DNA of 64,000 bases from the sequence record PQ390715.1. One strand, given 5' to 3'. Both the position numbers and the translations under genes were made by a program. How positions within the stretch are numbered: position 1 is the first letter of the stretch; every line of letters starts with the position of its first letter. Shown piece after piece: positions 1-64,000 of the stretch. Under the pieces are notes generated by a model. That model saw nothing but the letters and a program-made list of their open reading frames with translations, was not told the origin of the DNA and ran no database searches.

Positions 1-638
1 CGTGGCCCAAGAATAATACCATCGATGAAACCATGTTCACCATATTCAAGAGCTTCTTCTGCATTTAACCACAAATCACGGTCTGCATCTTTAAGTAGTT
101 GTTCGTGTGTTACACCAACTGCTTCTGCAATTTCTTTAGTCAATAGAGTGTTTAGGGCATCAGAATGTTTAAGTGAAATCTTCTGGTCAGTAATTAGACC
201 TTGTGTACCAGAACTTACTTGGTGACACATGAAATAAGAACGCTTACCACCTAAACGGAAACCTTTAGTACCAATTACAGATTGTGTATAGCAACCCATT
301 GATGCTGCATAGCCCATTACTACAGTGCGAATTGGAGAAATACAAGACTTAGCAACATCTGCAATACCCAAACCTGCGTGTACTGAACCACCCGGTGAAC
401 TAATGTAGAATGTAATAGGGGAATCACCTTGTGAGTCTAACCATACCAATTGTTGTTTGATGATATGTGCCATTTGATCATTGAAATCAGTATCAAGGAA
501 AATGATACGGTCTTGCATCATACGAGATGCTAGATCATATGTACGTTCTGAACCATTAACTTTCTCAACTACGTAAGGAATAGAAATGTTACGTACTTCG
601 CCATTAGCATAACCACCAAACATGAATTGTTCAACCAT
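1..638 (-). CDS. clpP: ATP-dependent Clp protease proteolytic subunit (3' end runs off the window; absent from the ORF track)
   Basis: Manual translation from ATG at 638: MVEQFMFGG...YDLASRMMQDRIIFL...YISSPGGSV...GYAASMG...MCHQVSSG...DADRDLWLNAEEALEYG..FIDGI; catalytic Ser (AASMG), His (MCHQ) and Asp (DRD) in ClpP spacing. Confidence 0.93.
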   Translation of the reverse strand, partial: MVEQFMFGGYANGEVRNISIPYVVEKVNGSERTYDLASRMMQDRIIFLDTDFNDQMAHIIKQQLVWLDSQGDSPITFYISSPGGSVHAGLGIADVAKSCISPIRTVVMGYAASMGCYTQSVIGTKGFRLGGKRSYFMCHQVSSGTQGLITDQKISLKHSDALNTLLTKEIAEAVGVTHEQLLKDADRDLWLNAEEALEYGEHGFIDGIILGP

Positions 639-672
639 TATTAATTTCCTCTATTATTTCGTTGTTGTGAGT

Positions 673-701
673 ATTATATCACTAAGATTTAAAATGTCCA
701 A
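673..701 (-). promoter_or_regulatory. sigma70-like promoter upstream of clpP
   Basis: Minus strand TTGGAC-N17-TATAAT with extended -10 TG. Confidence 0.6.
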
Positions 702-702
702 A

Positions 703-1143
703 CTATTTTACTGGAATATTTGAAAAGAAATCAGTCATCCAATACGCCGTCTCTTTGTTGAATAATACTGGATCAAACTTAAGTAACTCAACATGACTTG
801 TATCATACACGCTTGTATCGGTAATGTCAAACAAAGTTTTAGTACTGAATAATGGATTACTCACTAGAAAGTAGTAATCAGCAGTAGTGCTAATGTCATC
901 ATAAAACACACCGTCATACCATCCATCATCATATACAAAAACAGAATCGTCATGAAGATAGTAAACTTCTATATGTAAACTCAAGTTCTTCATGGTTTCA
1001 ATCATTTTTGCCGTATGAGGATTTAACTTATTGACATTTTCAAACACATAAGAGTGTTTTTTATTCATATCAACAAATGAAAATATTCGTACTGAACGTA
1101 TATTCATATTACTCCAAATAAACAAGTGAATTAATGAAATCAT
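703..1143 (-). CDS. hypothetical protein
   Basis: 146-aa ORF in the co-oriented minus-strand run; true start may be downstream. Confidence 0.65.
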   Translation of the reverse strand: MISLIHLFIWSNMNIRSVRIFSFVDMNKKHSYVFENVNKLNPHTAKMIETMKNLSLHIEVYYLHDDSVFVYDDGWYDGVFYDDISTTADYYFLVSNPLFSTKTLFDITDTSVYDTSHVELLKFDPVLFNKETAYWMTDFFSNIPVK

Positions 1144-1492
1144 ATTTCAATTTATCATCAACATAATTCAAATCAACTTTAATCATCGGAGCATGGGAAC
1201 GTATAGACAGTGTTTCCATAAAGTACTGATTAAGTTTGTATGTATGGAAAAGATGAATATCTCGTTTCAACACCACCATTACTTCCCCGAACAGATCACA
1301 GAGTTCAACTTCAGTGTTAGTTGGGTCAAACCCATAACGATTCTTTAATGTACGTGGTTCTTTATTTCGATAATAATGCACAGCTTTATTACTATTCACT
1401 AACAAGTGATGATATGCATTACTATAAACTGAGCAAATAACTCGGCTTGGATAATTGGTATATTCTGGTAGTTCAAAATAAATTAATGACAC
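1109..1492 (-). CDS. hypothetical protein
   Basis: 127-aa ORF, GAGG SD upstream. Confidence 0.7.
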   Translation of the reverse strand: MSLIYFELPEYTNYPSRVICSVYSNAYHHLLVNSNKAVHYYRNKEPRTLKNRYGFDPTNTEVELCDLFGEVMVVLKRDIHLFHTYKLNQYFMETLSIRSHAPMIKVDLNYVDDKLKYDFINSLVYLE

Positions 1493-1504
1493 AATATCCT
1501 CTCA

Positions 1505-2296
1505 TTAAATTTCAAATACAAATTTAGGATTGTAATCAAAATTCTCACAAGCTCCACTGTATGATTCATAGCCTCGTGGATTACAAATGATACGTGTCTT
1601 ACCAATGTGGTAGTCAAAACTACTATGAACATGACCATGAATCCAAACATCAGCACCCAAATCTTCAATGTACTGATCCATATCGGAACAGTAACAACCA
1701 TTCAGTGAATCATTTTTATATTTTGGTGAAACACTTTGATAACTTGGTGCGTGATGGGTAACCACGATTACCTTGAAATCATTATCATGCATAAAGCGAA
1801 CTGTGTCAATAGAATTTTTGATAAATTGTTTATCTTTGTGATGCATAAACTCAGTATCATCTGGTGTCAGTTTCTTACGCCAAGGCTCTGATGTTGTTCC
1901 ATGACGGATATGTTTGTAATCGTTCATCTTCAGACGAGCATCAAACTTCGTCAAAGAATTACCTTTATCGAAGTCTGTCCACAGAGTACTACCAACAAGC
2001 AGTACTCCATCCAGCCATACAAATTTGTTTTGCAAAAAGATGAAATTAGGAATCTCATCTTGCATATCGGACAGTACTTTATGCGTTTTGTGGATATTGG
2101 AACCATAATATTCATGATTGCCAGGAACCAGTACTACATTCTTAAACTGCTTACATAGTGATTCTATACCAGTACGGTAACGACTGCGTTTAACTTCATC
2201 GAAGTCCCCAGCAATAATCAGTACTGTATCACTGTAATCACCACTATGGAGGTAATCAGTCCCACCGTGTACATCAGATGTTACAACAAATTTCAT
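1505..2296 (-). CDS. calcineurin-like metallophosphoesterase
   Basis: Motifs SDVH, AGD, PGNHEYY, THHAP, HGHVH. Confidence 0.9.
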   Translation of the reverse strand: MKFVVTSDVHGGTDYLHSGDYSDTVLIIAGDFDEVKRSRYRTGIESLCKQFKNVVLVPGNHEYYGSNIHKTHKVLSDMQDEIPNFIFLQNKFVWLDGVLLVGSTLWTDFDKGNSLTKFDARLKMNDYKHIRHGTTSEPWRKKLTPDDTEFMHHKDKQFIKNSIDTVRFMHDNDFKVIVVTHHAPSYQSVSPKYKNDSLNGCYCSDMDQYIEDLGADVWIHGHVHSSFDYHIGKTRIICNPRGYESYSGACENFDYNPKFVFEI

Positions 2297-2315
2297 AATT
2301 ACCTCCTATAAATGA

Positions 2316-3734
2316 TTAACCGAGTGATTCAAGAATACTATTAGAGAACACCTCAACAGCACTATCACGAATTTCTAAGATACGAGTATAGTCGTCACAA
2401 GTGTTTTTGTCAAATCTAAATTCAATAAACACTGGTAAAAATAGTGATGGCTCACCAGTACGCTTATCGAATACAATATCATTGCACTCTACTGTTACTA
2501 CTTGACCGATGAGTTCTTGCATTCTTTCCCAAATGGTTTTAAACGTCCATTCTGCGTCTTTCTCTTTAATTCCAGTACCTACATTAACTTTCAATGTACC
2601 GCACGCACTTTCCAGTTGTAAAGAACCAAGGCTACCTTTACGCTTACCTTCACCTTCATTGAAACCAACAATACGCAAGTCCAGTTGCATTTTGAGTTTC
2701 ATTTTCAATTGCTTAGGAGAAGTGTGAGATTTCCAGATACCATCTTCACATTTCAGTACTGAACCCTCTTCACCTACGCTCATTAGTTCACTATTGTACT
2801 CAAATGCTTCTTTGATGTTTAGAACTTTACGGAATCCAACCATACGAACAAAATCACTACTGAGTTCGTTAATTGCATCTACTAAGATCTCGCGACGTTC
2901 TTTACGTTTTACATCCCATACACCTTCACAAAATGCATCATATGGAACAACATCCCATAGAACAAATACAGTACGCATTGCTTCATTCTGACTGATACTA
3001 TCTTTTCCAGCTTTCTGAATTATACCATTGCCAGTAGTGCGTGGGAGAATGGTTTCTCCATCATTGTCCAGTACTACACCTTCCCCCATAAAGACCACAC
3101 CACTACTAAAACGTTCATCTTTACTTTGGATGATGTGAGCAAGACCTGCCATCTCACCATCACGACAACCCAGGAAGTCGTATAGTTTACCATTACGGGA
3201 TGTAGAAGTTAATGAACCATTAATGACAACGTGGTTCAAGTACTGACCATCCATTTTCACTTCTGATATAGCGTAACCATAATCTTTGAAGTTGATGTTC
3301 TTTGCAGTCTTTTTGTCAATCAAAGAACAACGCATATATGGTTCGTCTTTAATAAAGCCTTTACCAAATACATCATTGCAGTTCTTTTCTTGAATACCAC
3401 AATCAAGGTTTTTAGTAAGCATTTTACGGAGAACTTCCTGATCATCTTCAGATACAGAACCCAGTACTGAAGCAATGAAATCACGCCCCGCATTTCCTGT
3501 CACATCACGCTTGTAAATGCATTCTAGCTTATCAATTGCTTCATCTAACGTCATATGTTGATATACGTCATCAGCGTCAGGGAGCTTCTTATAGCCACTT
3601 ACGATAGAAGGGTCTAGAGTATATTTCAGTACTTTTTGTAAAGTTACATTATCTTTATTTTGTTCAAGAATAGCTTTTTTGCCTAGTGTACTGCTAGTAT
3701 TTTTAATGCTTTCAAGAATTGCTAAAATGCTCAT
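2316..3734 (-). CDS. lig: ATP-dependent DNA ligase (T4 gp30-like)
   Basis: Adenylation motif EVKMDG, FMGEG, LWDV, EEGSVLK, K-x-K motif (KMKLK), OB-fold tail with LFLPVFIEFRFDK. Confidence 0.95.
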   Translation of the reverse strand: MSILAILESIKNTSSTLGKKAILEQNKDNVTLQKVLKYTLDPSIVSGYKKLPDADDVYQHMTLDEAIDKLECIYKRDVTGNAGRDFIASVLGSVSEDDQEVLRKMLTKNLDCGIQEKNCNDVFGKGFIKDEPYMRCSLIDKKTAKNINFKDYGYAISEVKMDGQYLNHVVINGSLTSTSRNGKLYDFLGCRDGEMAGLAHIIQSKDERFSSGVVFMGEGVVLDNDGETILPRTTGNGIIQKAGKDSISQNEAMRTVFVLWDVVPYDAFCEGVWDVKRKERREILVDAINELSSDFVRMVGFRKVLNIKEAFEYNSELMSVGEEGSVLKCEDGIWKSHTSPKQLKMKLKMQLDLRIVGFNEGEGKRKGSLGSLQLESACGTLKVNVGTGIKEKDAEWTFKTIWERMQELIGQVVTVECNDIVFDKRTGEPSLFLPVFIEFRFDKNTCDDYTRILEIRDSAVEVFSNSILESLG

Positions 3735-3745
3735 TGTATATTCCT

Positions 3746-4948
3746 TTATAGATAATACTTTCCAATATAAAGTGGATTACTAATTGATAGTTGAACGTGA
3801 CACGGCTTATCTTGGTAGTAACGAGAACTTGATGTTTTGCGTTCATTTGGTGGGAAGAATGGGGAACGATAGCCATTCCATGTACTAAATGATGAGTGTT
3901 CATTAATATCAACATCCATTACCATAATCCCATTATCATCAATTTGAACTGGATATGCACTAAAGCGTTCAAATTTATCATTATAATGGATATTATAATC
4001 TCCACTACGCCCATAATAACTACGCGTTGTATTATTACTTACACCAAAAAATACGCGATATGTTTGTTCATTATCTTTAGTCATAAATGGTACGTTCTCG
4101 TTGAAACGTCCATTATTCATAAGATCATCAACATTTATTTCTTCATATTTAATTTTTAGGTCTTTTGCTTTAAATGATTTATTGTGTACCAGTACTGGAA
4201 TGTTAGATTCACCTAATGGGTTATGTCTGTTTGTTCTATAGCTTTGCCAAAAATCATTAGCAAGTTTAATTTCTTCATCTGCCGTAGTCTTCTTATTCAA
4301 GAGTGCACGAGGTTCCAGATTGTAATTATCCAAACGTTGATTCAATGCATAAGTTCCACGAGTACTGTTGAAAAGTAAATGATAAACAGAACTTTTGTCG
4401 GGGTATGCAAATTCTTTAGTTTTCTTTATACAAATTGCATGAACTTTACCGCAGTAATAGTAATCTTCTTTGAGATAAGTGAAACCATCACCAACTTTAA
4501 GACCTGCTACAGTTTCTTTTTGTTGTTCTTTTTTATTTTCTTTTTCAACCAACTTAGCAAACGTTTTTGTTTTACCATTAATTAATTCTAAGTTATTGTT
4601 GAAAAACATTGGGTCTACAAAAACACCTTTGATTATATCGTTATTGATAATTAAATCATTCATGTTTTTGGCACTAATCATAAATTCAAATCCTTCTGGG
4701 TGACGGATCGTGAAATATGTTTCTCGTGCATGAGTTGTTAATTTATCAACTACACAAAATCCCGTAGTTGGAACGTTGTCAATATATAACGATGGAAGAT
4801 TGTTCTTCTTTGCCCAGTACTCTGCTCTCTCTTTCTTTGTTTCAAACGCTTTTGTATGTGATTTTGTTGCATCGATAATAAAACCATCAACTTGGTTGTG
4901 GTTTACATAGGAACGTGCAACAAATAACTTCTCTGGAAAATCCATCAA
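3746..4948 (-). CDS. hypothetical protein (400 aa)
   Basis: Long open frame; FTIRHPEGFEFMISAKN segment; no function recognised. Confidence 0.8.
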   Translation of the reverse strand: MMDFPEKLFVARSYVNHNQVDGFIIDATKSHTKAFETKKERAEYWAKKNNLPSLYIDNVPTTGFCVVDKLTTHARETYFTIRHPEGFEFMISAKNMNDLIINNDIIKGVFVDPMFFNNNLELINGKTKTFAKLVEKENKKEQQKETVAGLKVGDGFTYLKEDYYYCGKVHAICIKKTKEFAYPDKSSVYHLLFNSTRGTYALNQRLDNYNLEPRALLNKKTTADEEIKLANDFWQSYRTNRHNPLGESNIPVLVHNKSFKAKDLKIKYEEINVDDLMNNGRFNENVPFMTKDNEQTYRVFFGVSNNTTRSYYGRSGDYNIHYNDKFERFSAYPVQIDDNGIMVMDVDINEHSSFSTWNGYRSPFFPPNERKTSSSRYYQDKPCHVQLSISNPLYIGKYYL

Positions 4949-5364
4949 ATAGTCCTCATTGTGCTGATTGCTTTTAATGTGTCAAACAATGCACCATATT
5001 TTACTTGCATTAGTTGATCACCAGCAGGAAGATTCATACGCATAACAGCCATGTCTTCAATCATTTCAGACGTACACAGTACTGCTACACAGGTAATAGC
5101 ATCATTCAATCCAGCTTCATTGAATTTGGCAAACGGAACTTTTCCCTGTTTGCTAAGGTTGTTATAATAAGAATTTAACTTATCATGTCCACCAGCATTT
5201 AGTACTACAATAGTTTCGTGTTCATAGTACCATTCATCAATAATAGTACTGAAAGCAGTACCTTCATATTCTTTAATTAGTTTAACACCAGCATGGAATG
5301 CTTGAATACCAGCTTGGACACCTTGGCAGTACATATTAGTTAAACAATACAATTTCATTTCCAT
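4945..5364 (-). CDS. peptidyl-tRNA hydrolase 2 (Pth2)-like protein
   Basis: GIQAFHA (compare Pth2 AQxxHA), TIVVLN, FNEAG..AITCVAV; 139 aa. Confidence 0.6.
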   Translation of the reverse strand: MEMKLYCLTNMYCQGVQAGIQAFHAGVKLIKEYEGTAFSTIIDEWYYEHETIVVLNAGGHDKLNSYYNNLSKQGKVPFAKFNEAGLNDAITCVAVLCTSEMIEDMAVMRMNLPAGDQLMQVKYGALFDTLKAISTMRTI

Positions 5365-5582
5365 ACCTCTTGTTTTTCTACGTAGCCTTTCCCATCACAG
5401 TGTGGACAAGCATAAAAGCTGCGGTAATCTTCTGACGGTACTTGTTGTGTTCCATTACATGTAGGACATACTTTACGTGCACCCGAAATAATACGTTCAT
5501 GGTGTTCAGCTTGTTTAGCTGAATCAAAAATACGACCATCTTCAGTTTGGTATTTTTCTACCATAACTTGAATTACTTTCAT
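5355..5582 (-). CDS. small DnaJ-type zinc-finger protein
   Basis: CPTCNGT and CPHCDGKG repeats. Confidence 0.7.
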   Translation of the reverse strand: MKVIQVMVEKYQTEDGRIFDSAKQAEHHERIISGARKVCPTCNGTQQVPSEDYRSFYACPHCDGKGYVEKQEVWK

Positions 5583-5592
5583 TTCTATTTCC

Positions 5593-5862
5593 TTATAAAA
5601 ATGTTAAATCTTCAGTACTTAATTGTGATAATTTACCATCATATTCAATTTCAACATATACATTTTGGTCATAAACAGCAACTACACGTTTAATAACTCC
5701 AATCTTCACGACATTCTTTTTGTAGTTGAACTCAACTGAACAACCAATAAGTTTATTTGATAGAATCTCACGTATTTGATTAGCATGGTCTTTTAGGATA
5801 GAATTAATAGATTTTTTCATAATATATCTATCATTCAAATATTTTTTAACTACATCATGCAT
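5593..5862 (-). CDS. family C small paralogue
   Basis: N-terminal helix then NKLIGCSV and a beta-rich tail. Confidence 0.65.
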   Translation of the reverse strand: MHDVVKKYLNDRYIMKKSINSILKDHANQIREILSNKLIGCSVEFNYKKNVVKIGVIKRVVAVYDQNVYVEIEYDGKLSQLSTEDLTFL

Positions 5863-5867
5863 AATTA

Positions 5868-6626
5868 TTACCTTTTGAAACGATTGAATGAGTACTCATC
5901 TTTTTCTTTACGTAAGTATCTCATTCCACCACTTTGTGGAGTAGCGAGAGTTAAGTCACCCGTCAAGAACTGACTATCAATCCAAATGCGATTACCGTAA
6001 ATTAGTGGATCTGTAACTGCTGTATGTCCACTAAAGACACAATGCACTCCATCTAACTTAGGTGCATAATATGTATTATTAGTTCTACAATAATCGAATG
6101 TTTTTCTATCCCACAAGCACTTATCAATTATATCAGCACTAAGTGATTTTGTCCCATTAACAAATCGTTCCCATGTTGTATATTCCAACGGAACTCCAGC
6201 ATGAACTAACCCAATCTTCAATCCTCGGTGATTGATTTGGATAATCATAGGGAGATCCTTTAAGTACTGACGAAAGAATTGAATGCCTGTTCCTCCAACT
6301 TCATCAAGGAATTTATCACCACCATTACTTATCCAACAATGATACCAATCTCGAAGTGTTTCCGAATCAACGCACATCATCTCATGATTACCCGCAATCA
6401 TGTAACGATTTTCTCCGAACAAAAATTCAAAAAGGAGCTTTGAATTTTGTTCTCCACGGTCGATAATATCACCTACACTGAAAACATAATCATTGTGTGT
6501 AATACCAAATTCTTTCACTGTAGCATCCCATAGTTTACCATTACCATGCAAATCACCTACAATGTATAAATCTTTATCATCAGGTACGGTTACTTCTAAG
6601 AAGTGTTTCATTATTACTCCAACCAT
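5868..6626 (-). CDS. Ser/Thr protein phosphatase (lambda NinI/PrpA-like)
   Basis: VGDLHG, VGDIIDRG, GNHE, HAG, GHT motifs; likely start MKHFLEV. Confidence 0.9.
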   Translation of the reverse strand: MVGVIMKHFLEVTVPDDKDLYIVGDLHGNGKLWDATVKEFGITHNDYVFSVGDIIDRGEQNSKLLFEFLFGENRYMIAGNHEMMCVDSETLRDWYHCWISNGGDKFLDEVGGTGIQFFRQYLKDLPMIIQINHRGLKIGLVHAGVPLEYTTWERFVNGTKSLSADIIDKCLWDRKTFDYCRTNNTYYAPKLDGVHCVFSGHTAVTDPLIYGNRIWIDSQFLTGDLTLATPQSGGMRYLRKEKDEYSFNRFKR

Positions 6627-6865
6627 ATAATATTAGTGTGTTTAGTAACTTGTGTTCCAGCAAAAGAACCATCTTTAAGATAAGTATTAATTTTAAAACG
6701 CCATTCACCACCACTAATATACATATCAGTAATAATATACTTTCCATACCCTCTGGAGTTTATTAATCGTACTTCTTGACCAATATATTTTGGCTTCAGA
6801 TCATTTATAAAATCATCAGCCAAAGACATAAGATATCGCAGATGTGATAAGTCAGTGTTGAACAT
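6614..6865 (-). CDS. family C small paralogue
   Basis: KPKYIGQEVRL. Confidence 0.7.
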   Translation of the reverse strand: MFNTDLSHLRYLMSLADDFINDLKPKYIGQEVRLINSRGYGKYIITDMYISGGEWRFKINTYLKDGSFAGTQVTKHTNIIWLE

Positions 6866-7080
6866 TATTTCTTTCTCTTATATTTGTTAATAATATCTTG
6901 GGTAAGTGAAATAAAAATATATACTAATGTTACAGGCCAAATAATAGCCATCAGTGCTGCTGTTTGGAGATTCATGATAATCATGATTTCATCTTTAAAA
7001 CAACCCCAATTGAGTACTAGAAAGTTGGTTATAAATGTAACAAATGCTACAAATCCATATATTGCAAAAAATGTTATCAT
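6865..7080 (-). CDS. small membrane protein
   Basis: Two hydrophobic stretches, WP motif, basic C-terminus. Confidence 0.7.
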   Translation of the reverse strand: MITFFAIYGFVAFVTFITNFLVLNWGCFKDEIMIIMNLQTAALMAIIWPVTLVYIFISLTQDIINKYKRKK

Positions 7081-7082
7081 AA

Positions 7083-7412
7083 TTATTCCTCATCATCCAC
7101 TAAAACAAGATAATCCAAACTCAACTCGGTATCTATGTAACAATCACAATTCAAGTACTCAATTTCAGCACCTATAGTTCTCCCATTCTTAAATATCTCA
7201 ATGATTTTCATTCTAGTATTGGGATTAATGTGTTCAATGTCGTATTCGTATTCAGGGTCAATATACTCACTTGTCATACGTTTGATGTATTGTTCCGAAT
7301 ATCGTACAGTTTTACCTATAAGATCATTACTCAACGTCTGATAAAAATCATCTTGAATTTTGAATAATGACCTATAAAAAATATTATGTTGAATTAGTGG
7401 TTTCATTGACAT
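7083..7412 (-). CDS. family C small paralogue
   Basis: NDLIGKTVRY. Confidence 0.7.
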   Translation of the reverse strand: MSMKPLIQHNIFYRSLFKIQDDFYQTLSNDLIGKTVRYSEQYIKRMTSEYIDPEYEYDIEHINPNTRMKIIEIFKNGRTIGAEIEYLNCDCYIDTELSLDYLVLVDDEE

Positions 7413-53518: not shown

Positions 53519-53519
53519 G

Positions 53520-55984: not shown

Positions 55985-56204
55985 GTATCTTTTCCTTTAT
56001 AGAGAATTTAAGATATCGAAGCATACTTTCAATGTAATACTCTTGTCTGTCAGTGCCAAGAAAGTACATGAGTTGAATGTATAAAACTTCTGCACTCCTT
56101 TCCGCTGGAGACTTGTTTGTGTCGTTTGGAAGTTGATTTGTATGTTTTCTTGATTTAATTAGTCGTTCTTTTAACTCATCGTCTGTTAAGTATTTCATTT
56201 GCAT
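55953..56204 (-). CDS. family B paralogue
   Basis: YFLGTDRQEYY. Confidence 0.78.
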   Translation of the reverse strand: MQMKYLTDDELKERLIKSRKHTNQLPNDTNKSPAERSAEVLYIQLMYFLGTDRQEYYIESMLRYLKFSIKEKIHDQVFKNPNS

Positions 56205-56430
56205 TTACTTTTTCCTTAATAGTGATTTTAAGATATCTAATCATACGTGCAACATATTCCTCTTGTCTATCAGTTCCCAGAAGATATGGTAGTGATTGGA
56301 ATAATACTTCTGCACTCCTTTCTGCTGGGGTTTGGTTTAGGTCAATTGGACGTTTATTGGTATATCTCTTGGCACGAACTAATCTCTCGACGTATTCATT
56401 ATAGGTTAAGTATATCATTTCATTTTGCAT
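56176..56430 (-). CDS. family B paralogue
   Basis: YLLGTDRQEEY. Confidence 0.78.
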   Translation of the reverse strand: MQNEMIYLTYNEYVERLVRAKRYTNKRPIDLNQTPAERSAEVLFQSLPYLLGTDRQEEYVARMIRYLKITIKEKVNANEILNRR

Positions 56431-56650
56431 TTACTTTTTCCTTAATACTCATTATAAGATGTTCAATCATATTTTGAACCATAAATTCTTGTTTATCAGT
56501 TCCAAGAACGTATGGTAGCTTCTGAAACAATACATTTGCAGATACTTCAGATATTGATTGATTTGGACCGAACTTAAGAGTAATGTTTTTGGTTTTTAAC
56601 ATCTTCTCTTGAAATTCTTCATTCGTTAAGTATATCATTTCATTTTGCAT
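56420..56650 (-). CDS. family B paralogue
   Basis: YVLGTDKQEFM. Confidence 0.78.
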   Translation of the reverse strand: MQNEMIYLTNEEFQEKMLKTKNITLKFGPNQSISEVSANVLFQKLPYVLGTDKQEFMVQNMIEHLIMSIKEKVNAK

Positions 56651-56866
56651 TTACATTCTCTCATATATATTTTGGGTTAAAAGGTCAATCCAGATTTCCA
56701 CATATCGTTGTTGGTGTTGCGTCCCTAACAGTACACCCAACTTAGCTTCACACTCTAATAACAATCTGGTTTTGTATGGTAGACTTTGGAATCCTATAGT
56801 AGCATCTAATTTGGTAATTGCATAGTTGATTCGGATGAATCTTTCTTGCAATGTGATGTTGATCAT
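56651..56866 (-). CDS. family B paralogue
   Basis: VLLGTQHQQRY. Confidence 0.78.
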   Translation of the reverse strand: MINITLQERFIRINYAITKLDATIGFQSLPYKTRLLLECEAKLGVLLGTQHQQRYVEIWIDLLTQNIYERM

Positions 56867-57153
56867 TTCTTAGTACACCTCAGTGGTTGGGTCATTTGAT
56901 GAAAGTACAGCTTACCTCTGATTTCCAGTAGTAACTCCGCGATTAAGCGATTTACTTCTGTATCTTGATAGTTTGTTCCTAAGAATACACCCATCTTTAA
57001 CTCACGCATCATAATCATTTTCTTACTGTGTTGAATTTCTGGGTTGTGATAGATTGTATTACGTTTGTGCGTAATTTTTGTCATACGCTCGGTATATTCA
57101 TCTTTACTTAAATTGATCATTTGCATGTTCATCAACCTCACATTTATTTTCAA
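56863..57153 (-). CDS. family B paralogue
   Basis: VFLGTNYQDTE. Confidence 0.78.
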   Translation of the reverse strand: MKINVRLMNMQMINLSKDEYTERMTKITHKRNTIYHNPEIQHSKKMIMMRELKMGVFLGTNYQDTEVNRLIAELLLEIRGKLYFHQMTQPLRCTKK

Positions 57154-57155
57154 TA

Positions 57156-57422
57156 CTATTCTTTAGTTTGTAGATATAGTTTTCTTCCAATATATCTCTT
57201 AAGTGCGATTATGTATTCATCTACATAATACTCCTGATAGTTTGTTCCTATGAATGCACCCACCTTTAACTCAAGTTTCATAATCATCTTATTTCCGTGT
57301 TTAATGACTTCTCCGTGATGGATTTCATTAAGTCCAGGTGCAATTTTTACCAGGCGTTCTTTATATTTTGCTTGAGATAATTTAATCATTTTCATGTTAA
57401 TTACCCTTACATTTATTTTCAA
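57156..57422 (-). CDS. family B paralogue
   Basis: AFIGTNYQEYY. Confidence 0.78.
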   Translation of the reverse strand: MKINVRVINMKMIKLSQAKYKERLVKIAPGLNEIHHGEVIKHGNKMIMKLELKVGAFIGTNYQEYYVDEYIIALKRYIGRKLYLQTKE

Positions 57423-57621
57423 TACTATTCATTAGTTCTCTAAGATAGTTTTTTACCTTACCTGCCTGATAGTTGGTCCCTAGAAAGTTGCATAACTCTG
57501 CTTCTATAATTTTGATTTTTCTGATATCAGGCTTCAATCTTTTGTTATTGAATATTTGAATCCTTATATCTCTGGATGCATTTAAACGTTTTTGATATTC
57601 ATGGTAAGTTAAATTAATCAT
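57397..57621 (-). CDS. family B paralogue
   Basis: NFLGTNYQAGK. Confidence 0.78.
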   Translation of the reverse strand: MINLTYHEYQKRLNASRDIRIQIFNNKRLKPDIRKIKIIEAELCNFLGTNYQAGKVKNYLRELMNSIENKCKGN

Positions 57622-57836
57622 TTACTTTGTATCTCTCTCTGGAGGGCATCAATTAACATCAGTACAGCATTCTCTTGATAGTTTGTTCCTAAGACTGAAA
57701 GCATCTTAATCTCATTTACTAAAATCAACTTCTTTGAGGGTTCAATAATGTGACTATCATAAACGGCCTTCCGTGCTGGATAAGTTTTCGCCAGTAGAAC
57801 ATAAAATTCGTCTTTACTTAAATTAATCATTTGCAT
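57618..57836 (-). CDS. family B paralogue
   Basis: SVLGTNYQENA. Confidence 0.78.
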   Translation of the reverse strand: MQMINLSKDEFYVLLAKTYPARKAVYDSHIIEPSKKLILVNEIKMLSVLGTNYQENAVLMLIDALQREIQSK

Positions 57837-58045
57837 TTACTTTTAACCTCTTTCTGTAGAGCGTCAATCCATAGATCTACATACATTTGTTGATAGTTTG
57901 TGCCTAAGAGTGCACCTACATAGAGTTCAGTTACTAGTGCGTGCTTAAGGTTAGCTTGGATGCTCTTATCGCTTGATATCATTCTCCTTCTGCTTCCACA
58001 TGTTTTCAGGAGTCTGATGTATTCAAAGCCTTGTAAATTTCTCAT
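57827..58045 (-). CDS. family B paralogue
   Basis: ALLGTNYQQMY. Confidence 0.78.
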   Translation of the reverse strand: MRNLQGFEYIRLLKTCGSRRRMISSDKSIQANLKHALVTELYVGALLGTNYQQMYVDLWIDALQKEVKSKCK

Positions 58046-58257
58046 ATTTTGGATACCACCTTGTTACGTAAGGAACTTAATAATACGTCAGTGTAGATGT
58101 TTTGATAGTTTGTCCCTACGAATACACCCAACTTCATTTCAGCTATTATAACACATTTGTCCTCTTGTGCAATAGATTTGTTTAACACAATACTATACAC
58201 TTTTGATTTGATAGTTTGTAACCTCCAATGATACTGATACTCATTAAGGATTATCAT
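58042..58257 (-). CDS. family B paralogue
   Basis: VFVGTNYQNIY. Confidence 0.78.
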   Translation of the reverse strand: MIILNEYQYHWRLQTIKSKVYSIVLNKSIAQEDKCVIIAEMKLGVFVGTNYQNIYTDVLLSSLRNKVVSKI

Positions 58258-58504
58258 TCTCTTTCCTCCAGATTTCGGTTCTCATGTGTTGGCAGTGTGC
58301 ATCAATATATTGCTCTATCGATCTGGCGATTGCTGTTTTATCAGTGCCTGTCATCAGTACAAGCATCTCGGCCTCACAGTGAAGTAAACGCATGATATCA
58401 TAGGGTAATATTTCAGATACCGTGTCATAGTGTTTCTGTGCCAGTGTCTGCAATAGTTTACAATACATTTTGTGATTTAGTCTTTGTCGCATTGTTTCTT
58501 CCAT
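58244..58504 (-). CDS. family B paralogue (divergent)
   Basis: EAEMLVLMTGTDKTAI. Confidence 0.68.
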   Translation of the reverse strand: MEETMRQRLNHKMYCKLLQTLAQKHYDTVSEILPYDIMRLLHCEAEMLVLMTGTDKTAIARSIEQYIDAHCQHMRTEIWRKENDNP

Positions 58505-58749
58505 TCTCTTCTGGCTTGGCGGGTTTTATCTGATATTTCGTTTCTCAATGCAGAGATATATCGTAGAGTGAACAGTTCTTGATAGTTAGTCCCTATGAAT
58601 TTATTAAGATATACATCAGCGTTGACGATATCAGCTTCACGGGAATTATAAAGTTTATTGTTCGTGCGGAGGGTGTTTAGAAGAGAGAAGAGGGCAGTCT
58701 GATACTCCACTCCTGATAAAATCTTCATGTTTTGTGAGCAAATAATCAT
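58477..58749 (-). CDS. family B paralogue
   Basis: KFIGTNYQELF. Confidence 0.75.
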   Translation of the reverse strand: MIICSQNMKILSGVEYQTALFSLLNTLRTNNKLYNSREADIVNADVYLNKFIGTNYQELFTLRYISALRNEISDKTRQARREWKKQCDKD

Positions 58750-58969
58750 CTAGTTTATCCTGTATAACATTCGTTAATTGTTCGATATATTCTGTGCAAA
58801 ACTTATCTTGATATTGAGTCCCCATAAAGTACAGCAACCATAGCTCATTAACTTTAGCTCGCATTTGGTTCCATGTAAGGCTGGGGTCACCGTAGACTAT
58901 CCTTGTGATGGGGGTTAGTTTACGAATTATAGTTTCAAATTCATCATCAGTTAAGTGTTTCATTTGCAT
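58655..58969 (-). CDS. family B paralogue
   Basis: YFMGTQYQDKF. Confidence 0.75.
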   Translation of the reverse strand: MQMKHLTDDEFETIIRKLTPITRIVYGDPSLTWNQMRAKVNELWLLYFMGTQYQDKFCTEYIEQLTNVIQDKLDDYLLTKHEDFIRSGVSDCPLLSSKHPPHEQ

Positions 58970-59178
58970 TTGTCCCTTATTAAATCAGTGAGGGCAACTA
59001 TGTGTGCAACAACATACTCTTCCTGAAAGTTCGTCCCCAGTACAGCCATCATGCGTATATCGGTGGTGTTTATCCTGTGTTCCCTTACACATAAACCTTC
59101 TGTGTGAGGAAGTGTAAAATATTTGTTTATTGCAGCAACGATAATTTTATTCTTCTCGTAATTACTTAAATGTTTCAT
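58960..59178 (-). CDS. family B paralogue
   Basis: AVLGTNFQEEY. Confidence 0.78.
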   Translation of the reverse strand: MKHLSNYEKNKIIVAAINKYFTLPHTEGLCVREHRINTTDIRMMAVLGTNFQEEYVVAHIVALTDLIRDKCK

Positions 59179-59387
59179 AGTTTGCTCTTAATGTAGTTCT
59201 GAAGTTCAATTAAGTATTTCCCTACATAATACTCCTGAAAGTCTGTATCCAAAAATGCACCCATAAGTAAATCCTTCTCCATTGCCCTTGATAAGTTAAG
59301 GTCTGCATTTGAAAGGTATATAAGTAATATTTCAGTCTGGACAGAATTGAAACGTTTCTTATATTCTTCTGGTGTTAATATAATCAT
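59175..59387 (-). CDS. family B paralogue
   Basis: AFLDTDFQEYY. Confidence 0.78.
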   Translation of the reverse strand: MIILTPEEYKKRFNSVQTEILLIYLSNADLNLSRAMEKDLLMGAFLDTDFQEYYVGKYLIELQNYIKSKL

Positions 59388-59599
59388 AATTTGCTCCTGA
59401 TGTATTTCTCAAGAGATGACAAATACTTTTCCTCATAATACTCCTGATAGTCTGTTCCCAAGAATGCACCCAAAAGTATTTCATTTTCCAATACCTCGGC
59501 TAAGTTTAAATCAGACGTCTCTTCGTATATTATGAGGATTTCAAGTTGTCTGGCAGCGATGCGTTCAGTATATTGATATGAGTTTTCTATAATAATCAT
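59384..59599 (-). CDS. family B paralogue
   Basis: AFLGTDYQEYY. Confidence 0.78.
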   Translation of the reverse strand: MIIIENSYQYTERIAARQLEILIIYEETSDLNLAEVLENEILLGAFLGTDYQEYYEEKYLSSLEKYIRSKL

Positions 59600-59805
59600 A
59601 TTTTACTCTTAATATCTTCTATTAAAAATCGAATCCATTCTTCAACATAATCTTCCTGATGGTTTGTGTTCAGTACAGCCAACATGCGGATCTCTGCTCT
59701 TGCAACTTCAATTTCAGTTTTAGGCAGGTCTTTGCTGATATCCACCATTAAGTCCATGTATTTCAAGATAAGACCGTATGATTGGGTTCGTGTTATAGTT
59801 TTCAT
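59596..59805 (-). CDS. family B paralogue
   Basis: AVLNTNHQEDY. Confidence 0.78.
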   Translation of the reverse strand: MKTITRTQSYGLILKYMDLMVDISKDLPKTEIEVARAEIRMLAVLNTNHQEDYVEEWIRFLIEDIKSKI

Positions 59806-60002
59806 TGTTTCCTCGTGGACAATATTTTATTTTTCAATGTATCCATATATTGCCACACCCATCTACCCTGATAGTTTGTTCCCAATGTAATCAAAAGGTA
59901 TAACTCCATTCGTTCTACGTGTGTGTCTGTGTTGTAAATCTTTACGTAGTTTTTACGTAACAGTGATTGATATTCTTCTTTATTTAAAATACGCATTTTC
60001 AT
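59802..60002 (-). CDS. family B paralogue
   Basis: ITLGTNYQGRW. Confidence 0.78.
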   Translation of the reverse strand: MKMRILNKEEYQSLLRKNYVKIYNTDTHVERMELYLLITLGTNYQGRWVWQYMDTLKNKILSTRKQ

Positions 60003-60226
60003 AGTTTACTCGTTATATCTTCAATTAAATACCAAATCCAATCGTTGACATACCTTTCCTGAAAGTTAGTTCCAATGAATAGTGCCATAATTAATTCACG
60101 CTTATAGGCAATACCACGGTCATGGGACTTATACATTATCATAGCCATGTTATTGATAAGTCTTTCGTGGTGCTGTTCTTTAGTTAAAATACGCATAGGG
60201 ACTCCCTTAAAATTAATATCAATCAT
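59999..60226 (-). CDS. family B paralogue (likely start MRIL)
   Basis: LFIGTNFQERY. Confidence 0.78.
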   Translation of the reverse strand: MIDINFKGVPMRILTKEQHHERLINNMAMIMYKSHDRGIAYKRELIMALFIGTNFQERYVNDWIWYLIEDITSKL

Positions 60227-60254
60227 ATTTTATACGATTCATATAAAAAGTCAA
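60227..60254 (-). promoter_or_regulatory. sigma70-like promoter heading the family B array
   Basis: TTGACT-N16-TAAAAT. Confidence 0.6.
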
Positions 60255-60351
60255 TAACATTTTATTCGTAATACCCCTTTATCGAAGTCGCTAAGGTTAC
60301 CCGCCCTTTAGCCCCCTACGCATTTTGCCATAGTCCAATCCCTTTTATTTC

Positions 60352-60417
60352 AAAAAAGTCAAGGGATTACCTATGCATTTTTTTAACGCATAATTTTAAA
60401 AACGCCTTGACTTTTTT
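60352..60417. repeat. 13-bp perfect inverted repeat in a gene-free junction
   Basis: AAAAAAGTCAAGG (60352-60364) and CCTTGACTTTTTT (60405-60417). Confidence 0.8.
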
Positions 60418-60445
60418 CTGAATCAGTACTAGATCCCTTTACGCA

Positions 60446-60655
60446 TTAATCCTTCGTTACGCTAACGATTATCTGTGTATCCCCGTAGTCCTGCCATACT
60501 TCCACGCCATCGGTCGCCCTGGTTAGTCGTGCTGTCATCTGCTTAATGGTCTTAGGCTTTAGTGGAACCTGTTGCAGTACTGTACGCATAGCATCATTGA
60601 CGTTATCATGTACGCCTGCAATAGTACCTAGAACGCTGTATACTGTATAGAACAT
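60446..60655 (-). CDS. hypothetical early-region protein
   Basis: 69 aa; GGAGG SD; GC-richer codons. Confidence 0.75.
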   Translation of the reverse strand: MFYTVYSVLGTIAGVHDNVNDAMRTVLQQVPLKPKTIKQMTARLTRATDGVEVWQDYGDTQIIVSVTKD

Positions 60656-60723
60656 ATGTATGCCCTCCTGATATAGTTAAGGCCGCTACAAGGCGGCCTA
60701 TGATGTTTGGTGATGTGTAACGC

Positions 60724-61125
60724 TTACAGTCCTAAGATAGTGCGTGCTTCGTTACGTTCCGTACACAGCTGCATGATGTGAGCAAGTAAGTCCTTGCTAA
60801 TGTATCCGGTGTTCATAGCTTCACGAATAGATACATCATAAGCACCGAACCCCGTGCGAACGATACGCACATCATTCAGGTTAGTATTATAGATACCGCC
60901 GAGATCAACGGCTTCGAATACTACATCAACAGAATATTCATTGTTGCCATCGTGGAAGTTTTCCAGTGCAATAGTATTGGATACCGCCCAACGTTTGCAG
61001 TTTCCAATGATGCGGCACTGTTCCGGTTGGATAGTACCATTACTTACAGCGTACTCCAGTGCATCTTTACCAAAAGTCCGAGCCAGTACTAAAACGTCAG
61101 CGAAGGAATTGATTGAGAAGGTCAT
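60724..61125 (-). CDS. hypothetical early-region protein
   Basis: Start moved to MTFSINS (AAGGAG SD). Confidence 0.75.
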   Translation of the reverse strand: MTFSINSFADVLVLARTFGKDALEYAVSNGTIQPEQCRIIGNCKRWAVSNTIALENFHDGNNEYSVDVVFEAVDLGGIYNTNLNDVRIVRTGFGAYDVSIREAMNTGYISKDLLAHIMQLCTERNEARTILGL

Positions 61126-61147
61126 GATAAAACTCCTTAATTTAGGA

Positions 61148-61212
61148 GGGAGAACCATTTCCCCCTCTCTATGTAAAACATTATACTTGATTCTAAGTAC
61201 TATGCAAGTACT
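61148..61212 (-). promoter_or_regulatory. promoter + 5' stem-loop cassette, copy 1
   Basis: TTGCAT-N16-TATAAT then GGGGGAA-ATGG-TTCTCCC hairpin. Confidence 0.8.
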
Positions 61213-61214
61213 TT

Positions 61215-61547
61215 TTACATTTTAATACCTGGATTCAGGTAACGGTGAGATCCATATTCTGGATAGGTTTCGTTCCAGTACTGTAAATCGATAGTACCTT
61301 TCGCGTTAATCTTGTCTACCAGCTTATTCATCTTAGCGTATACTACGTCAGCATCGATGCGTTTAAAGCCAGTAGCTTTAGTGAAGTAGTAGTGATTTGC
61401 TTCACTATCATTAAGGATATACCGAGCACCGTTTGCAGTCTGTGCGATAATGATTGAGTATTCTACTTCCCGATCCAGACCGTCGATGAATACAGATGAA
61501 ACATTGGTACGGATGAAAGCTTTAACGATAGCGATTGAAGTACTCAT
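61215..61547 (-). CDS. hypothetical early-region protein
   Basis: 110 aa; AGGAG SD. Confidence 0.75.
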   Translation of the reverse strand: MSTSIAIVKAFIRTNVSSVFIDGLDREVEYSIIIAQTANGARYILNDSEANHYYFTKATGFKRIDADVVYAKMNKLVDKINAKGTIDLQYWNETYPEYGSHRYLNPGIKM

Positions 61548-61751
61548 TTTGAATCTCCTAACTTTGTGGGCCGTCGCACCATTGCCGCCCTACGAGATAC
61601 ATTATTGCAGTACTGATATACTTTGTCAATACTTTTTTATTAATAGTTTTCACTCCACCAGCAGATAGTTACTCACCGTTATTAACTATATATTTTGGAT
61701 ACACTTATGCACCCTGTGGGCTAGTTTTTGTCTATGCGTATATAATAGCAA

Positions 61752-61780
61752 AGGGACTGACCGGAGTCAATCCCTTTTTT
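61752..61780. terminator. terminator hairpin (possibly bidirectional)
   Basis: GGGATTGAC-TCCG-GTCAGTCCC on minus; long T-run on plus. Confidence 0.7.
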
Positions 61781-61792
61781 TATTCTTTTTTG

Positions 61793-61993
61793 TTAGATGA
61801 TTCTCCAATCTTCTACGATCATGGTAAGATAACGGACCATCGATTCAAGTGATTCGAATTCCCGATAGTCTGCCGCTCCACCAGCGGTACAAGTACAGCC
61901 GATTAAACCATTTTGCAATTCCTTAATCTGTACATCGATAAGGTTGGCTTTAGCTTCTTTCAGTACTTCAACCAGGGCGATAGCGATAGACAT
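61793..61993 (-). CDS. hypothetical early-region protein
   Basis: 66 aa; GGAG SD. Confidence 0.72.
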   Translation of the reverse strand: MSIAIALVEVLKEAKANLIDVQIKELQNGLIGCTCTAGGAADYREFESLESMVRYLTMIVEDWRII

Positions 61994-62017
61994 AATGTTT
62001 TACTCCAAACTATTGAC

Positions 62018-62076
62018 GGGAGAACTATTCCCCCGCTCGATGTAAAACATTATACATTACTGGTTAGTACTGTCAA
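62018..62076 (-). promoter_or_regulatory. promoter + 5' stem-loop cassette, copy 2
   Basis: TTGACA-N16-TATAAT, GGGGGAA-TAG-TTCTCCC. Confidence 0.8.
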
Positions 62077-62083
62077 ATAGTTT

Positions 62084-62341
62084 TTATGAAATATCTTCGA
62101 TGTAGTCGGCCCATTTCATTTTTTCAGTACTGTCAACGGCGACCGGATTATTTGGATCAAACCATTCACCATTACCGCAGTACATACCGACAGCTACGGT
62201 TTTATAGCCATCCTGGGCCGTACTCCACGACATTGCACGATAGATATGGCCTTTAACTGGTTGCAGTACTGGTAACGTTTTATGGTCTTCTACGTAGGCC
62301 ATAGCTTGAGGATTTACCCGATATTGTGTGAACTGTTCCAT
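62084..62341 (-). CDS. hypothetical early-region protein
   Basis: 85 aa. Confidence 0.72.
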   Translation of the reverse strand: MEQFTQYRVNPQAMAYVEDHKTLPVLQPVKGHIYRAMSWSTAQDGYKTVAVGMYCGNGEWFDPNNPVAVDSTEKMKWADYIEDIS

Positions 62342-62417
62342 TATGTTTCCCCTTGTAGTTAGTAAAGTTATTACATCAGTACTATCAAGCTATGTCAATA
62401 GTACTGAAATAAAACTT

Positions 62418-62642
62418 TTAGATTAGATTATTGATGCCGTTGATGGTAGACTCGCTTTCTTCTTTCTCCCATTGGCGGTAGTACTTCCATGCTTCATGAT
62501 ATGTGGCGATTAGTTCATCTTTTTGATCCTGAGTACATGCCAGTACTGAATCACGGTAAGAGGTGTTATAGATAGAATCGAATGATTTCTTCTCTTCTGC
62601 CAGGGTAGCTACTTCCCGCATCAGTTCATCAAAGTTAGCCAT
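62418..62642 (-). CDS. hypothetical early-region protein
   Basis: 74 aa; AAGGAG SD. Confidence 0.72.
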   Translation of the reverse strand: MANFDELMREVATLAEEKKSFDSIYNTSYRDSVLACTQDQKDELIATYHEAWKYYRQWEKEESESTINGINNLI

Positions 62643-62660
62643 TTTATTACTCCTTTTAGT

Positions 62661-62722
62661 GGGGGAGGATATCTCCCCCTATGCAAAACATTATACTTTG
62701 TTTTAGTTATTATGCAAGTACT
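62661..62722 (-). promoter_or_regulatory. promoter + 5' stem-loop cassette, copy 3
   Basis: TTGCAT-N16-TATAAT, GGGGGAG-ATATC-CTCCCCC. Confidence 0.8.
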
Positions 62723-62973
62723 TTTTTCATATAAAGATTATATTCTACACCGCCGTAACCTTCTAAGATGATATGTTTTGCGTTATCACGTTTGCACATA
62801 GTGAAACCGTTGTTGATGTGTTCTGCATTTTCCAGGGCTACATCACCGATTGCAGCACATACAGCACTTACAACGGTATTCCGCAAAGTACTGGTATCAT
62901 TAGCGGTCATAGTAGTTTGCAGTACTACGTTGTCGTATACGTGTGCATTGATAGTGATTTCGATAGTGTTCAT
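62710..62973 (-). CDS. hypothetical early-region protein
   Basis: 87 aa; GGAG SD. Confidence 0.72.
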   Translation of the reverse strand: MNTIEITINAHVYDNVVLQTTMTANDTSTLRNTVVSAVCAAIGDVALENAEHINNGFTMCKRDNAKHIILEGYGGVEYNLYMKKVLA

Positions 62974-62993
62974 GGTGTATCTCCCGGACTGGC

Positions 62994-63057
62994 GGGAGAA
63001 CTATTCCCCCGCTCTATGTAAAACATTATACGTTAATCTAACTACAATGCAAGTACT
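62994..63057 (-). promoter_or_regulatory. promoter + 5' stem-loop cassette, copy 4
   Basis: TTGCAT-N16-TATAAT, GGGGGAA-TAG-TTCTCCC. Confidence 0.8.
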
Positions 63058-63059
63058 TT

Positions 63060-63251
63060 TTAAATTTTATTTCCGATATAGTCCGGTCTATTCTTTTCGG
63101 TCATACGCTTTGCTAATGTTTGCATATGGCTTATTGCGTTTAATGTGTCTTCCTCCAGGGATGAATCAACATAATCAGGATCATTCTTCACCTTGCAATG
63201 GTTATGATAGCGTAGTACTGCCAGTACTTTTTTAACTTCTTCAACTGTCAT
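63060..63251 (-). CDS. hypothetical early-region protein
   Basis: 63 aa; ATGA overlap. Confidence 0.7.
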   Translation of the reverse strand: MTVEEVKKVLAVLRYHNHCKVKNDPDYVDSSLEEDTLNAISHMQTLAKRMTEKNRPDYIGNKI

Positions 63252-63520
63252 AATAAGTATTCCACTTCGTTAGCTTTCAGGTTAGTATCAATCATCAGTG
63301 GATTTTTGTAGTTCACAAAACGATTAGTTTTCTCGATAGCGAATCCCATATAATCCAGCTTACTTACAGTACATTCATTCTTAAAAACTTCTTTCGCTGC
63401 ATTGATGGCTGATTCAATTGATAACCGACCATCTAAGTTAATGTTTCCAAATGATCCACCAGCAGAAGTAGGATTACCGTTCATATCTTTAATGATCATA
63501 GTAGCGGAGTAGCTGGACAT
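63248..63520 (-). CDS. hypothetical early-region protein
   Basis: 90 aa; AAGGA SD. Confidence 0.72.
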   Translation of the reverse strand: MSSYSATMIIKDMNGNPTSAGGSFGNINLDGRLSIESAINAAKEVFKNECTVSKLDYMGFAIEKTNRFVNYKNPLMIDTNLKANEVEYLL

Positions 63521-63542
63521 AATTTTGTTTCCTTTTAGTATC

Positions 63543-63601
63543 GGGGAGAACTATTCTCCCCTTGATGTAAACTATTATACAGTACTAAGATACTTTGTCA
63601 A
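63543..63601 (-). promoter_or_regulatory. promoter + 5' stem-loop cassette, copy 5
   Basis: TTGACA-N16-TATAAT, GGGGAGAA-TAG-TTCTCCCC. Confidence 0.8.
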
Positions 63602-63604
63602 TAC

Positions 63605-63826
63605 TTAATTACGTTTAAAATGATATGTACCGTTATCATCCTGTACGCCCCATACTGATTTACCATCAACACCAGTGAAGCCGGATTGTATTTCAATATG
63701 GAAACCATTATTATCAACTACAAAAACTTTTTTATTTTCATCCCGATAACATTGATATTCTGAATCAACATTAAAGGCCGCATCATTCAGAAGATTGGAA
63801 GCGTAAATGCAAGTCATTGTAGTCAT
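63605..63826 (-). CDS. hypothetical early-region protein
   Basis: Start moved to MTTMTCIY (AAGGA SD). Confidence 0.72.
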   Translation of the reverse strand: MTTMTCIYASNLLNDAAFNVDSEYQCYRDENKKVFVVDNNGFHIEIQSGFTGVDGKSVWGVQDDNGTYHFKRN

Positions 63827-63848
63827 GATTTTATTCCTTATTCTTTGA

Positions 63849-63914
63849 GGGAGAACCGTTCCCCCCCTCTCGATATAAAACATTATACTTGATTCTAAGT
63901 ACAATGCAAGTACT
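63849..63914 (-). promoter_or_regulatory. promoter + 5' stem-loop cassette, copy 6
   Basis: Near-identical to copy 1; TTGCAT-N16-TATAAT. Confidence 0.8.
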
Positions 63915-64000
63915 TTTTAAAAATAGTTTTCAGTACTGAATACTTATATAATAGATACATTTATGCACCCTGTGGGTCAGTGAGCTATCTCTCAATGAAT

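Follow-up and report, generated by a model that had tools for sequence, protein, structure and literature searches.

Iterated AGTACT palindromes in Rak2-like jumbo phages: dense on the terminal repeat and half-broken in a neighbouring island

The palindrome AGTACT occurs 199 times in the first 64,000 bases of the genome of Escherichia phage SHEFM2K, far more often than base composition, short-word frequencies or codon usage predict. This stretch, hereafter the window, comprises positions 1-64000 of record PQ390715.1 (348,006 bp; 100% identity match). SHEFM2K belongs to Asteriusvirus, among the "Rak2-like" jumbo myophages, a group that also includes PBECO4, 121Q and phAPEC6; the genes of the window are nearly all on the minus strand, most of them without an assigned function. 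Genome-wide counts were taken from the unannotated record ECO103 4-12-1 (350 kb), which is 98% identical to SHEFM2K.

Phages are generally described as purging short palindromes. For one palindrome, the reverse is true of this clade, to which the largest enterobacterial phages belong, and selection for it is measurable; this implies a sequence-reading component in jumbo-phage biology, be it for genome marking, protection, regulation or processing. From the form and placement of the sites we tentatively read AGTACT, with C-AGTACT-G as its optimum, as a high-density duplex-DNA recognition site for a sequence-specific dimeric DNA-binding protein, most likely one that the phage itself encodes.

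The excess and its conservation

Markov models predict 21.4 (order 0), 17.1 (order 1), 38.8 (order 2) or 78.1 (order 3) copies of AGTACT in the window, giving z-scores of 38, 44, 26 and 14, respectively, and AGTACT ranks first among hexamers under orders 1 to 3. An earlier note on this DNA, made from the letters alone, had called the palindrome strongly over-represented on the strength of 30 copies in positions 1-10000. Our recount of that interval gives 31, and the excess survives both the Markov models of orders 1 to 3 and codon shuffling. Other palindromic hexamers are not comparable, the runner-up being ATGCAT with 56 copies (2.6 times expectation).

Could the excess nevertheless have no function, and be a by-product of mutation or repair bias, of codon or dipeptide usage, or of repeated paralogues? 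The window does contain large arrays of paralogous small genes, and a Markov model of order 4 predicts 171 copies, which approaches the observed count. That expectation is high, however, because the parts of the hexamer are themselves enriched: AGTAC (273 copies) and GTACT (340 copies) exceed chance more than any other pentamers in the window. GTAC overall occurs 543 times against about 190 expected. The coding DNA of the window has 182 AGTACT. When synonymous codons are permuted inside each gene, the count falls to 51.2 ± 6.0 (z = 21.6), and when the order of the codons is randomized, to 23.5 ± 4.7 (z = 34). Sites are found in every sense-strand frame (76/42/59) of unrelated genes and between genes (17 intergenic), and their flanking sequences are diverse. 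These results rule out a codon, dipeptide or paralogue artefact and agree with the earlier note's view that the feature belongs to the DNA and not to the proteins. None of the one-mismatch neighbours of AGTACT is depleted in the window, AGTATT and AATACT included; there is therefore no signature of deamination or very-short-patch repair, and a repair bias of the Vsr/deamination type is ruled out as the cause. Since the sites are also conserved above background (see below), the explanation without function is already largely refuted, and we give it next to no credence.

Other palindromes in the window behave as the earlier note said phage palindromes normally do. GCGC is absent (21-46 expected), as are more than 20 G+C-rich hexamer palindromes; GATC is 2.4-fold under-represented (91 against about 219 expected), although the phage encodes a Dam-family methyltransferase, and CTAG occurs 77 times against about 138 expected.

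Conservation was measured in two comparisons, one with Escherichia virus TH47 (83% identity over 45 kb) and one, at greater distance, with nine orthologues in Pectobacterium phage CBB (51-65% nucleotide identity). AGTACT is intact in TH47 at 103 of 142 aligned sites (72.5%), compared with 43% for all hexamers and about 33% predicted from codon-position identities, and it is the best conserved of 201 frequent hexamers. Per-base identity with TH47 is 0.90-0.95 inside the sites and 0.80-0.90 around them. In the CBB orthologues the density is kept (28 vs 33 sites), and 6 of 28 sites share their position, where 0.13 would do so at random and about 1.3 by our estimate for 60% identity. The conservation in TH47, and the density kept in CBB despite positional turnover, suggest that selection bears chiefly on how many sites there are and that positions persist moderately. 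The positive selection that the earlier note had proposed is thus supported, the density being maintained across four genera (see below).

Form of the site and its place on the genome

The preferred form is the octamer C-AGTACT-G, CAGTACTG, present in 45 copies in the window against 2.2 expected. C stands directly 5' of AGTACT in 47-55% of sites, a position from which G is nearly excluded (2-7%), and G stands directly 3' in about 43%. Enrichment in the window is graded by half-site and roughly additive: 9.3 times expectation for AGTACT, 3.4 times for AGTACA plus TGTACT, and 1.8 times for TGTACA. The weaker AGTACA/TGTACT type is itself conserved relative to TH47 (64% overall, and 62% in island 1, described below). 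We read this as an affinity series, unlike the sharper specificity that would be expected of a restriction or modification enzyme.

A longer form may exist near the genome terminus, where a non-coding stretch of 2 kb (record 78.4-80.4 kb) holds about 22 AGTACT, many of them, in our reading of that sequence, within a form of about 14 bp, ATTCAGTACTGAAT. Four AGTACT exactly 13 bp apart (AGTACTATTATTC repeats) lie at about 78,510-78,554 of the record (L002 28510-28554), outside the window. This terminal stretch also has repeated GGGGAACTATC and CCATCCAGGG words and several promoters, and may be a terminus, packaging or origin region.

Along the bulk of the window (1-45283) there are 158 AGTACT, or 3.5 per kb, in all three frames of minus-strand genes and with a roughly Poisson distribution; 1-kb bins outside the two gaps described below have a mean of 3.7 and a variance of 4.0. 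Periodic spacing was not seen, the bins being Poisson-like and density depending on region (no formal test of long-range periodicity was run). Within the bulk, a stretch of 680 bp (21304-21985) contains two AGTACT and no convincing gene, only short open reading frames being annotated on its plus strand; it may be a regulatory region or an RNA gene. Over the whole of ECO103 4-12-1 the count is 918 against 119 expected; per kilobase, this is about 12 times what 50 kb sampled from the E. coli chromosome contain. Gene blocks of either strand carry sites, at 2.51 per kb of coding DNA compared with 5.07 per kb of non-coding DNA.

The richest zone, with 10-16 AGTACT per 2 kb, is the early-gene region together with the direct terminal repeat. 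In fEgEco12 this repeat is 20,993 bp long, with experimental support (PMC13070987). Position 20,993 of fEgEco12, the inner boundary of the repeat, maps to about position 60,294 of the window, and the inner end of the repeat with its early genes therefore occupies 60295-64000. Density on the repeat is 6-8 AGTACT per kb both in the close relatives of SHEFM2K and in CBB, whose first kilobase has 11. The last AGTACT of the dense zone is at 60,425, and the adjoining 5 kb outside the repeat has none. The earlier note had stated that the density persists to the end of the window. This is true of 60,425-64,000, with 25 sites (about 7 per kb), but not of 45,284-52,991 or 55,437-60,424, which have none and are the only such stretches in 350 kb. 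Between these two gaps (52992-55436) there are 16 AGTACT in 2.4 kb, a normal to high density. Directly after the inner end of the repeat, a sigma70-like promoter on the minus strand (60294-60200; TTGACT, 17-bp spacer, TATATT) heads a motif-poor gene array.

In the part of the window that belongs to the terminal repeat, 11 of the 25 AGTACT are intergenic, and most of these are in or beside sigma70-like promoters. Their placement varies: AGTACT may abut the -35 element (AGTAC-TTGCAT), overlap it (TTGAC-AGTACT) or lie next to the -10 element, and a subset of early promoters has an AGTAC-TTGACA or AGTAC-TTGCAT pattern. Another sigma70-like promoter that overlaps AGTACT (TTGAC-AGTACT) is at about 53,508. 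A promoter element is ruled out as the general explanation, as about 92% of AGTACT are inside genes and the positions at promoters vary.

A binding protein is favoured because the half-sites are graded, the flanks show preferences, density is twofold higher in non-coding DNA, and sites concentrate on the terminal repeat and at promoters. We infer a dimeric binder rather than a modification enzyme or nuclease, and a phage-encoded one. Each half of such a dimer would read one half-site, preferring AGT to TGT and accepting other triplets much less. With roughly 900-1000 sites in each genome, the protein could mark phage DNA or coat it, most heavily along the 21-kb terminal repeat and near the early promoters there. 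By analogy with T5, the cell probably receives the terminal repeat before any other phage DNA. Binding might serve to protect phage DNA, to organize it, or to shut off early transcription. Of the readings proposed in the earlier note, a methyltransferase site, a coating protein and a self tag all remain sensible candidates.

A different enzymology would make AGTACT a modification mark, on which a phage methyltransferase or other base-modifying enzyme acts; reading of the modified sites would serve protection, timing or self-recognition. AGTACT is a short palindrome of the restriction-modification type, the phage encodes Dam-family and C5 methyltransferases, and AGTACT clusters in terminal non-coding DNA; GATC clusters at oriC and P1 pac are examples of methylation-read sites. 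The HIP1 palindrome of cyanobacteria, which is likewise iterated, is a precedent, being linked with orphan methyltransferases (PMC4390886). Selection that extends in grades to TGTACT and TGTACA would, however, be unusual for a Type II methyltransferase, and the missing signature of deamination or very-short-patch repair also speaks against modification. Nor do the two recognizable methyltransferases obviously fit AGTACT. The Dam-family N6-adenine DNA methyltransferase (20223-20744, minus strand; 173 aa, NPPY motif, Pfam PF05869, E = 2e-31) is the only recognizable DNA methyltransferase in the window; its CBB homolog is annotated gp072. As far as is known, characterized PF05869 enzymes act on GATC, and the protein is a weak candidate for reader or writer of AGTACT. 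The C5 enzyme of the genome (286 aa, 76% conserved in CBB) also occurs outside the clade, in phi92, Campylobacter and ICP1-type phages. A further "methyltransferase" (24015-24860), so called in the paper on Sharanji, a phage that grows on E. coli K-12 MG1655, matches nothing in Pfam or the PDB, and its homologs are confined to Asteriusvirus. No ScaI-type pair of endonuclease and methyltransferase was identified, though no dedicated test was made. On balance we consider a modification mark unlikely and keep the dimeric DNA-binding protein as the preferred reading.

Islands without the palindrome

The first of the two gaps, island 1 (45284-52991, minus-strand genes), lacks AGTACT throughout its 7.7 kb but has 42 TGTACT on the plus strand, that is, AGTACA on the sense strand. 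Composition predicts 2.7 and order-2 simulations 11.0 ± 3.2, with a maximum of 21. These variant sites fall in all frames (15/13/12) and have the same C and G flanks as AGTACT sites. The homologous stretch of TH47 has the same pattern and also lacks AGTACT: of the 29 variant sites that align, 18 are conserved, and TH47 has AGTACT at none of them. In this region alone, the palindrome is systematically broken on one side and the broken form itself is maintained. No polar island was found in CBB just after its terminal repeat, and a Pfam scan of ten island-1 proteins gave no matches. Island 1 is our most puzzling result, and none of the explanations considered fully accounts for it.

The explanation that fits it best takes the polar pentamer AGTAC as the functional unit and has it read on a single strand by a moving or cutting phage enzyme such as a nicking enzyme, a helicase-nuclease with a Chi-like signal, or a primase or recombination function that starts there; the palindrome would be the cheapest way of placing the pentamer on both strands. 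The sense strand of island 1 carries 44 AGTAC units and the plus strand 0, against 7.2 expected. AGTAC and GTACT are the top pentamers of the window, and density peaks at the genome ends, where recombination between terminal repeats and protection of the ends would matter. There are precedents: in B. subtilis the Chi site has 5 bases, and site-specific single-strand nicks occur in T5 and in some Pseudomonas phages. The same explanation deals worst with the symmetric flanks, for C on one side, G on the other and a full palindrome in excess of AGTACV point to a symmetric reader of duplex DNA. Outside the islands AGTACA favours the sense strand by only about 1.6:1, compared with 1.28 from composition, and does so in genes of either orientation. 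A dedicated nuclease was not identified, and the opposite polarity of the second island is largely a paralogue effect. We therefore hold a strand-reading enzyme to be quite unlikely, and a protein that binds the duplex as a dimer remains our preferred reading.

Island 2 (55437-60294) consists of small paralogous genes (PHROG 4148) and extends up to the inner end of the terminal repeat. AGTACT is absent from it; of its nine AGTACA on the plus strand, we place five at a single paralogous position within the repeated family of small genes. Because AGTACA lies mostly at that one position, the opposite polarity of island 2 is weak evidence.

Base skews change abruptly between the islands, at about 54000-55500, with gene orientation unchanged: the values for GC are about -0.15/-0.2 before and about -0.02/-0.06 after, and those for AT about -0.03 before and about -0.23 after. 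A possible replication origin between the islands was considered on account of this shift at about 54-55 kb. The shift coincides with a change of gene family, at the start of the PHROG 4148 array, and the polarity of island 2 is largely paralogous. Long tandem arrays of paralogues of about 70 codons (PHROG 4148, about 25 copies, and PHROG 11711) occupy 54224-60142 of the window and 80.4-85.2 kb of the record, and a further array at 85-100 kb of the record encodes about 14 RCC1-like repeat proteins.

Spread among phages and known systems

The excess is kept in sampled stretches of four genera with different hosts. Besides Asteriusvirus these are Mimasvirus (CBB: 153 AGTACT in 41 kb, about 14-24 expected, and 168 in the 27 kb of its left end, which includes the terminal repeat), Alcyoneusvirus (Klebsiella phage K64-1: 39 in 14 kb, 3.2 expected) and Eneladusvirus (Serratia phage BF: 48 in 14 kb, 3.6 expected). 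No such excess was present in the stretches sampled from the distant relative Pseudomonas phage PA5oct (0 in 12 kb, 3.5 expected), phage T4 (3 in 25 kb, 5.0 expected) or E. coli K-12 (11 in 50 kb, 0.22 per kb, 4.6 expected).

The motif is not confined to jumbo phages. A scan of IMG/VR for the 14-mer retrieved a set of metagenomic viral contigs of 16-34 kb with 4-5.5 AGTACT per kb (L069, which is IMGVR_UViG_3300011786_000006, L071, L083, L068, L060, L044, L051, L039, L031 and others). In 14.3 kb, L069 has 72 AGTACT and 24 CAGTACTG, the latter against 0.27 expected. Its GC content is 0.42, it has terminase, portal, capsid and tail genes of the lambda/HK97 type, and nucleotide similarity to known phages was not found. 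Judged on these contigs, a second phage lineage, small and unrelated, carries the same 8-mer. No gene common to the small-phage contigs and the jumbo phages was found: the non-structural open reading frames of the contigs have no Pfam matches and essentially no PHROG matches, one of them had no match when the phage collection was searched with tblastn, and a scan for Dam relatives hit only 121Q.

Two unrelated lineages with the same 8-mer would be most simply explained by a common host factor, which raises the possibility that the reader is an Enterobacterales protein exploited or titrated by the phage. All AGTACT-rich genera infect Enterobacterales, and the Pseudomonas relative PA5oct has no site in the 12 kb sampled. 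A named candidate is the nucleoid-occlusion factor SlmA, whose site GTGAGTACTCAC has an identical AGTACT core; SlmA requires G1, T2, A4, G5 and a purine at position 3 of this 12-bp palindrome (PMC3020112). In the phage sites, however, position 3 is C in about 50% and G in 2-7%, GTRAGTACTYAC does not occur in 350 kb, and matches to the half-site flank number 19 against about 44 expected. The core thus matches but the flanks are wrong and depleted, and SlmA-binding sites are rejected. Another host regulator may be the reader instead; against any host reader, T4, also a coliphage, is not enriched in its sampled 25 kb. Overall we find a host reader distinctly improbable.

Several points count against the dimeric, phage-encoded binder that we prefer. 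No candidate protein has been identified, and about 80% of the genes are without functional assignment. Much the same sequence statistics could come from a methyltransferase or a nuclease, and flanks beyond ±1 are only weakly A/T-biased in the 350-kb record outside the terminal cluster. A simple symmetric binder alone fails to explain the 42 half-broken sites of island 1, all in one orientation and without an intact palindrome. Finally, since the 8-mer is present in unrelated small phages, the reader would have to be horizontally transferred or host-encoded.

A fuller scenario, which we regard as possible rather than probable, would combine these elements. Rak2-like jumbo phages would carry a palindromic "self" tag in roughly 1000 copies, densest on the terminal repeat; a dedicated protein would read it and separate phage from host DNA, serving protection, organization or timing; a polar half-site version would govern the 7.7-kb region of island 1; and the small phages would have adopted the code independently or by transfer. 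The variant island and the unrelated small-phage lineage offer two natural comparisons for finding the reader. AGTACT also provides an easy marker by which to recognize such phages in metagenomic data, and perhaps a means of engineering them.

The motif is not mentioned in the Asteriusvirus, CBB, Sharanji or fEgEco12 papers, and full-text searches for AGTACT with phage were likewise empty. An iterated AGTACT in phages thus looks undescribed, its distinctive features being the viral setting, the link to the terminal repeat and the polar variant island. Relative to the earlier note, the variant island, the concentration on the repeat and the spread across the clade and outside it are new.

The closest analogue appears to be HIP1 of cyanobacteria, the 8-bp palindrome GCGATCGC, which is 15- to 300-fold enriched, periodic, and associated with two orphan methyltransferases (PMC4390886, PMC5861425). 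HIP1 is conserved and its function is still uncertain (PMC5861425). Like the phage motif, it is a short palindrome over-represented genome-wide, in every frame and between genes, and its conservation between genomes exceeds background, implying selection over biased repair. HIP1 differs in belonging to a cellular chromosome, whereas AGTACT is viral, has a 6-bp core, is 8- to 9-fold enriched and Poisson-like, and is concentrated on a terminal repeat. The orphan methyltransferases of HIP1 are known, whereas for the phage motif there are only candidates. SlmA sites share the AGTACT core, the Enterobacterales host group and a palindrome read by a dimer (for the phage, a putative one), but they number about 50 per E. 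coli chromosome (PMC3020112), and their G1, T2 and purine-3 flanks are those depleted in the phage.

Chi sites and DNA uptake sequences resemble AGTACT in being frequent short words that statistically mark own versus foreign DNA; they are asymmetric and orientation-dependent, whereas the phage motif is palindromic except in island 1. The first-step-transfer DNA of T5 is not known to have any EcoRI sites, and the EcoP15I sites of T7 are all in one orientation. Islands 1 and 2 are similar in being local palindrome-free stretches, next to the terminal repeat, and the variant in island 1 is one-oriented. In T5 and T7, however, the sites are at or below chance and are tied to host restriction, whereas the island 1 variant is itself enriched, 4-fold (order 2) to 15-fold (composition), and elsewhere the genome is crowded with the intact palindrome.

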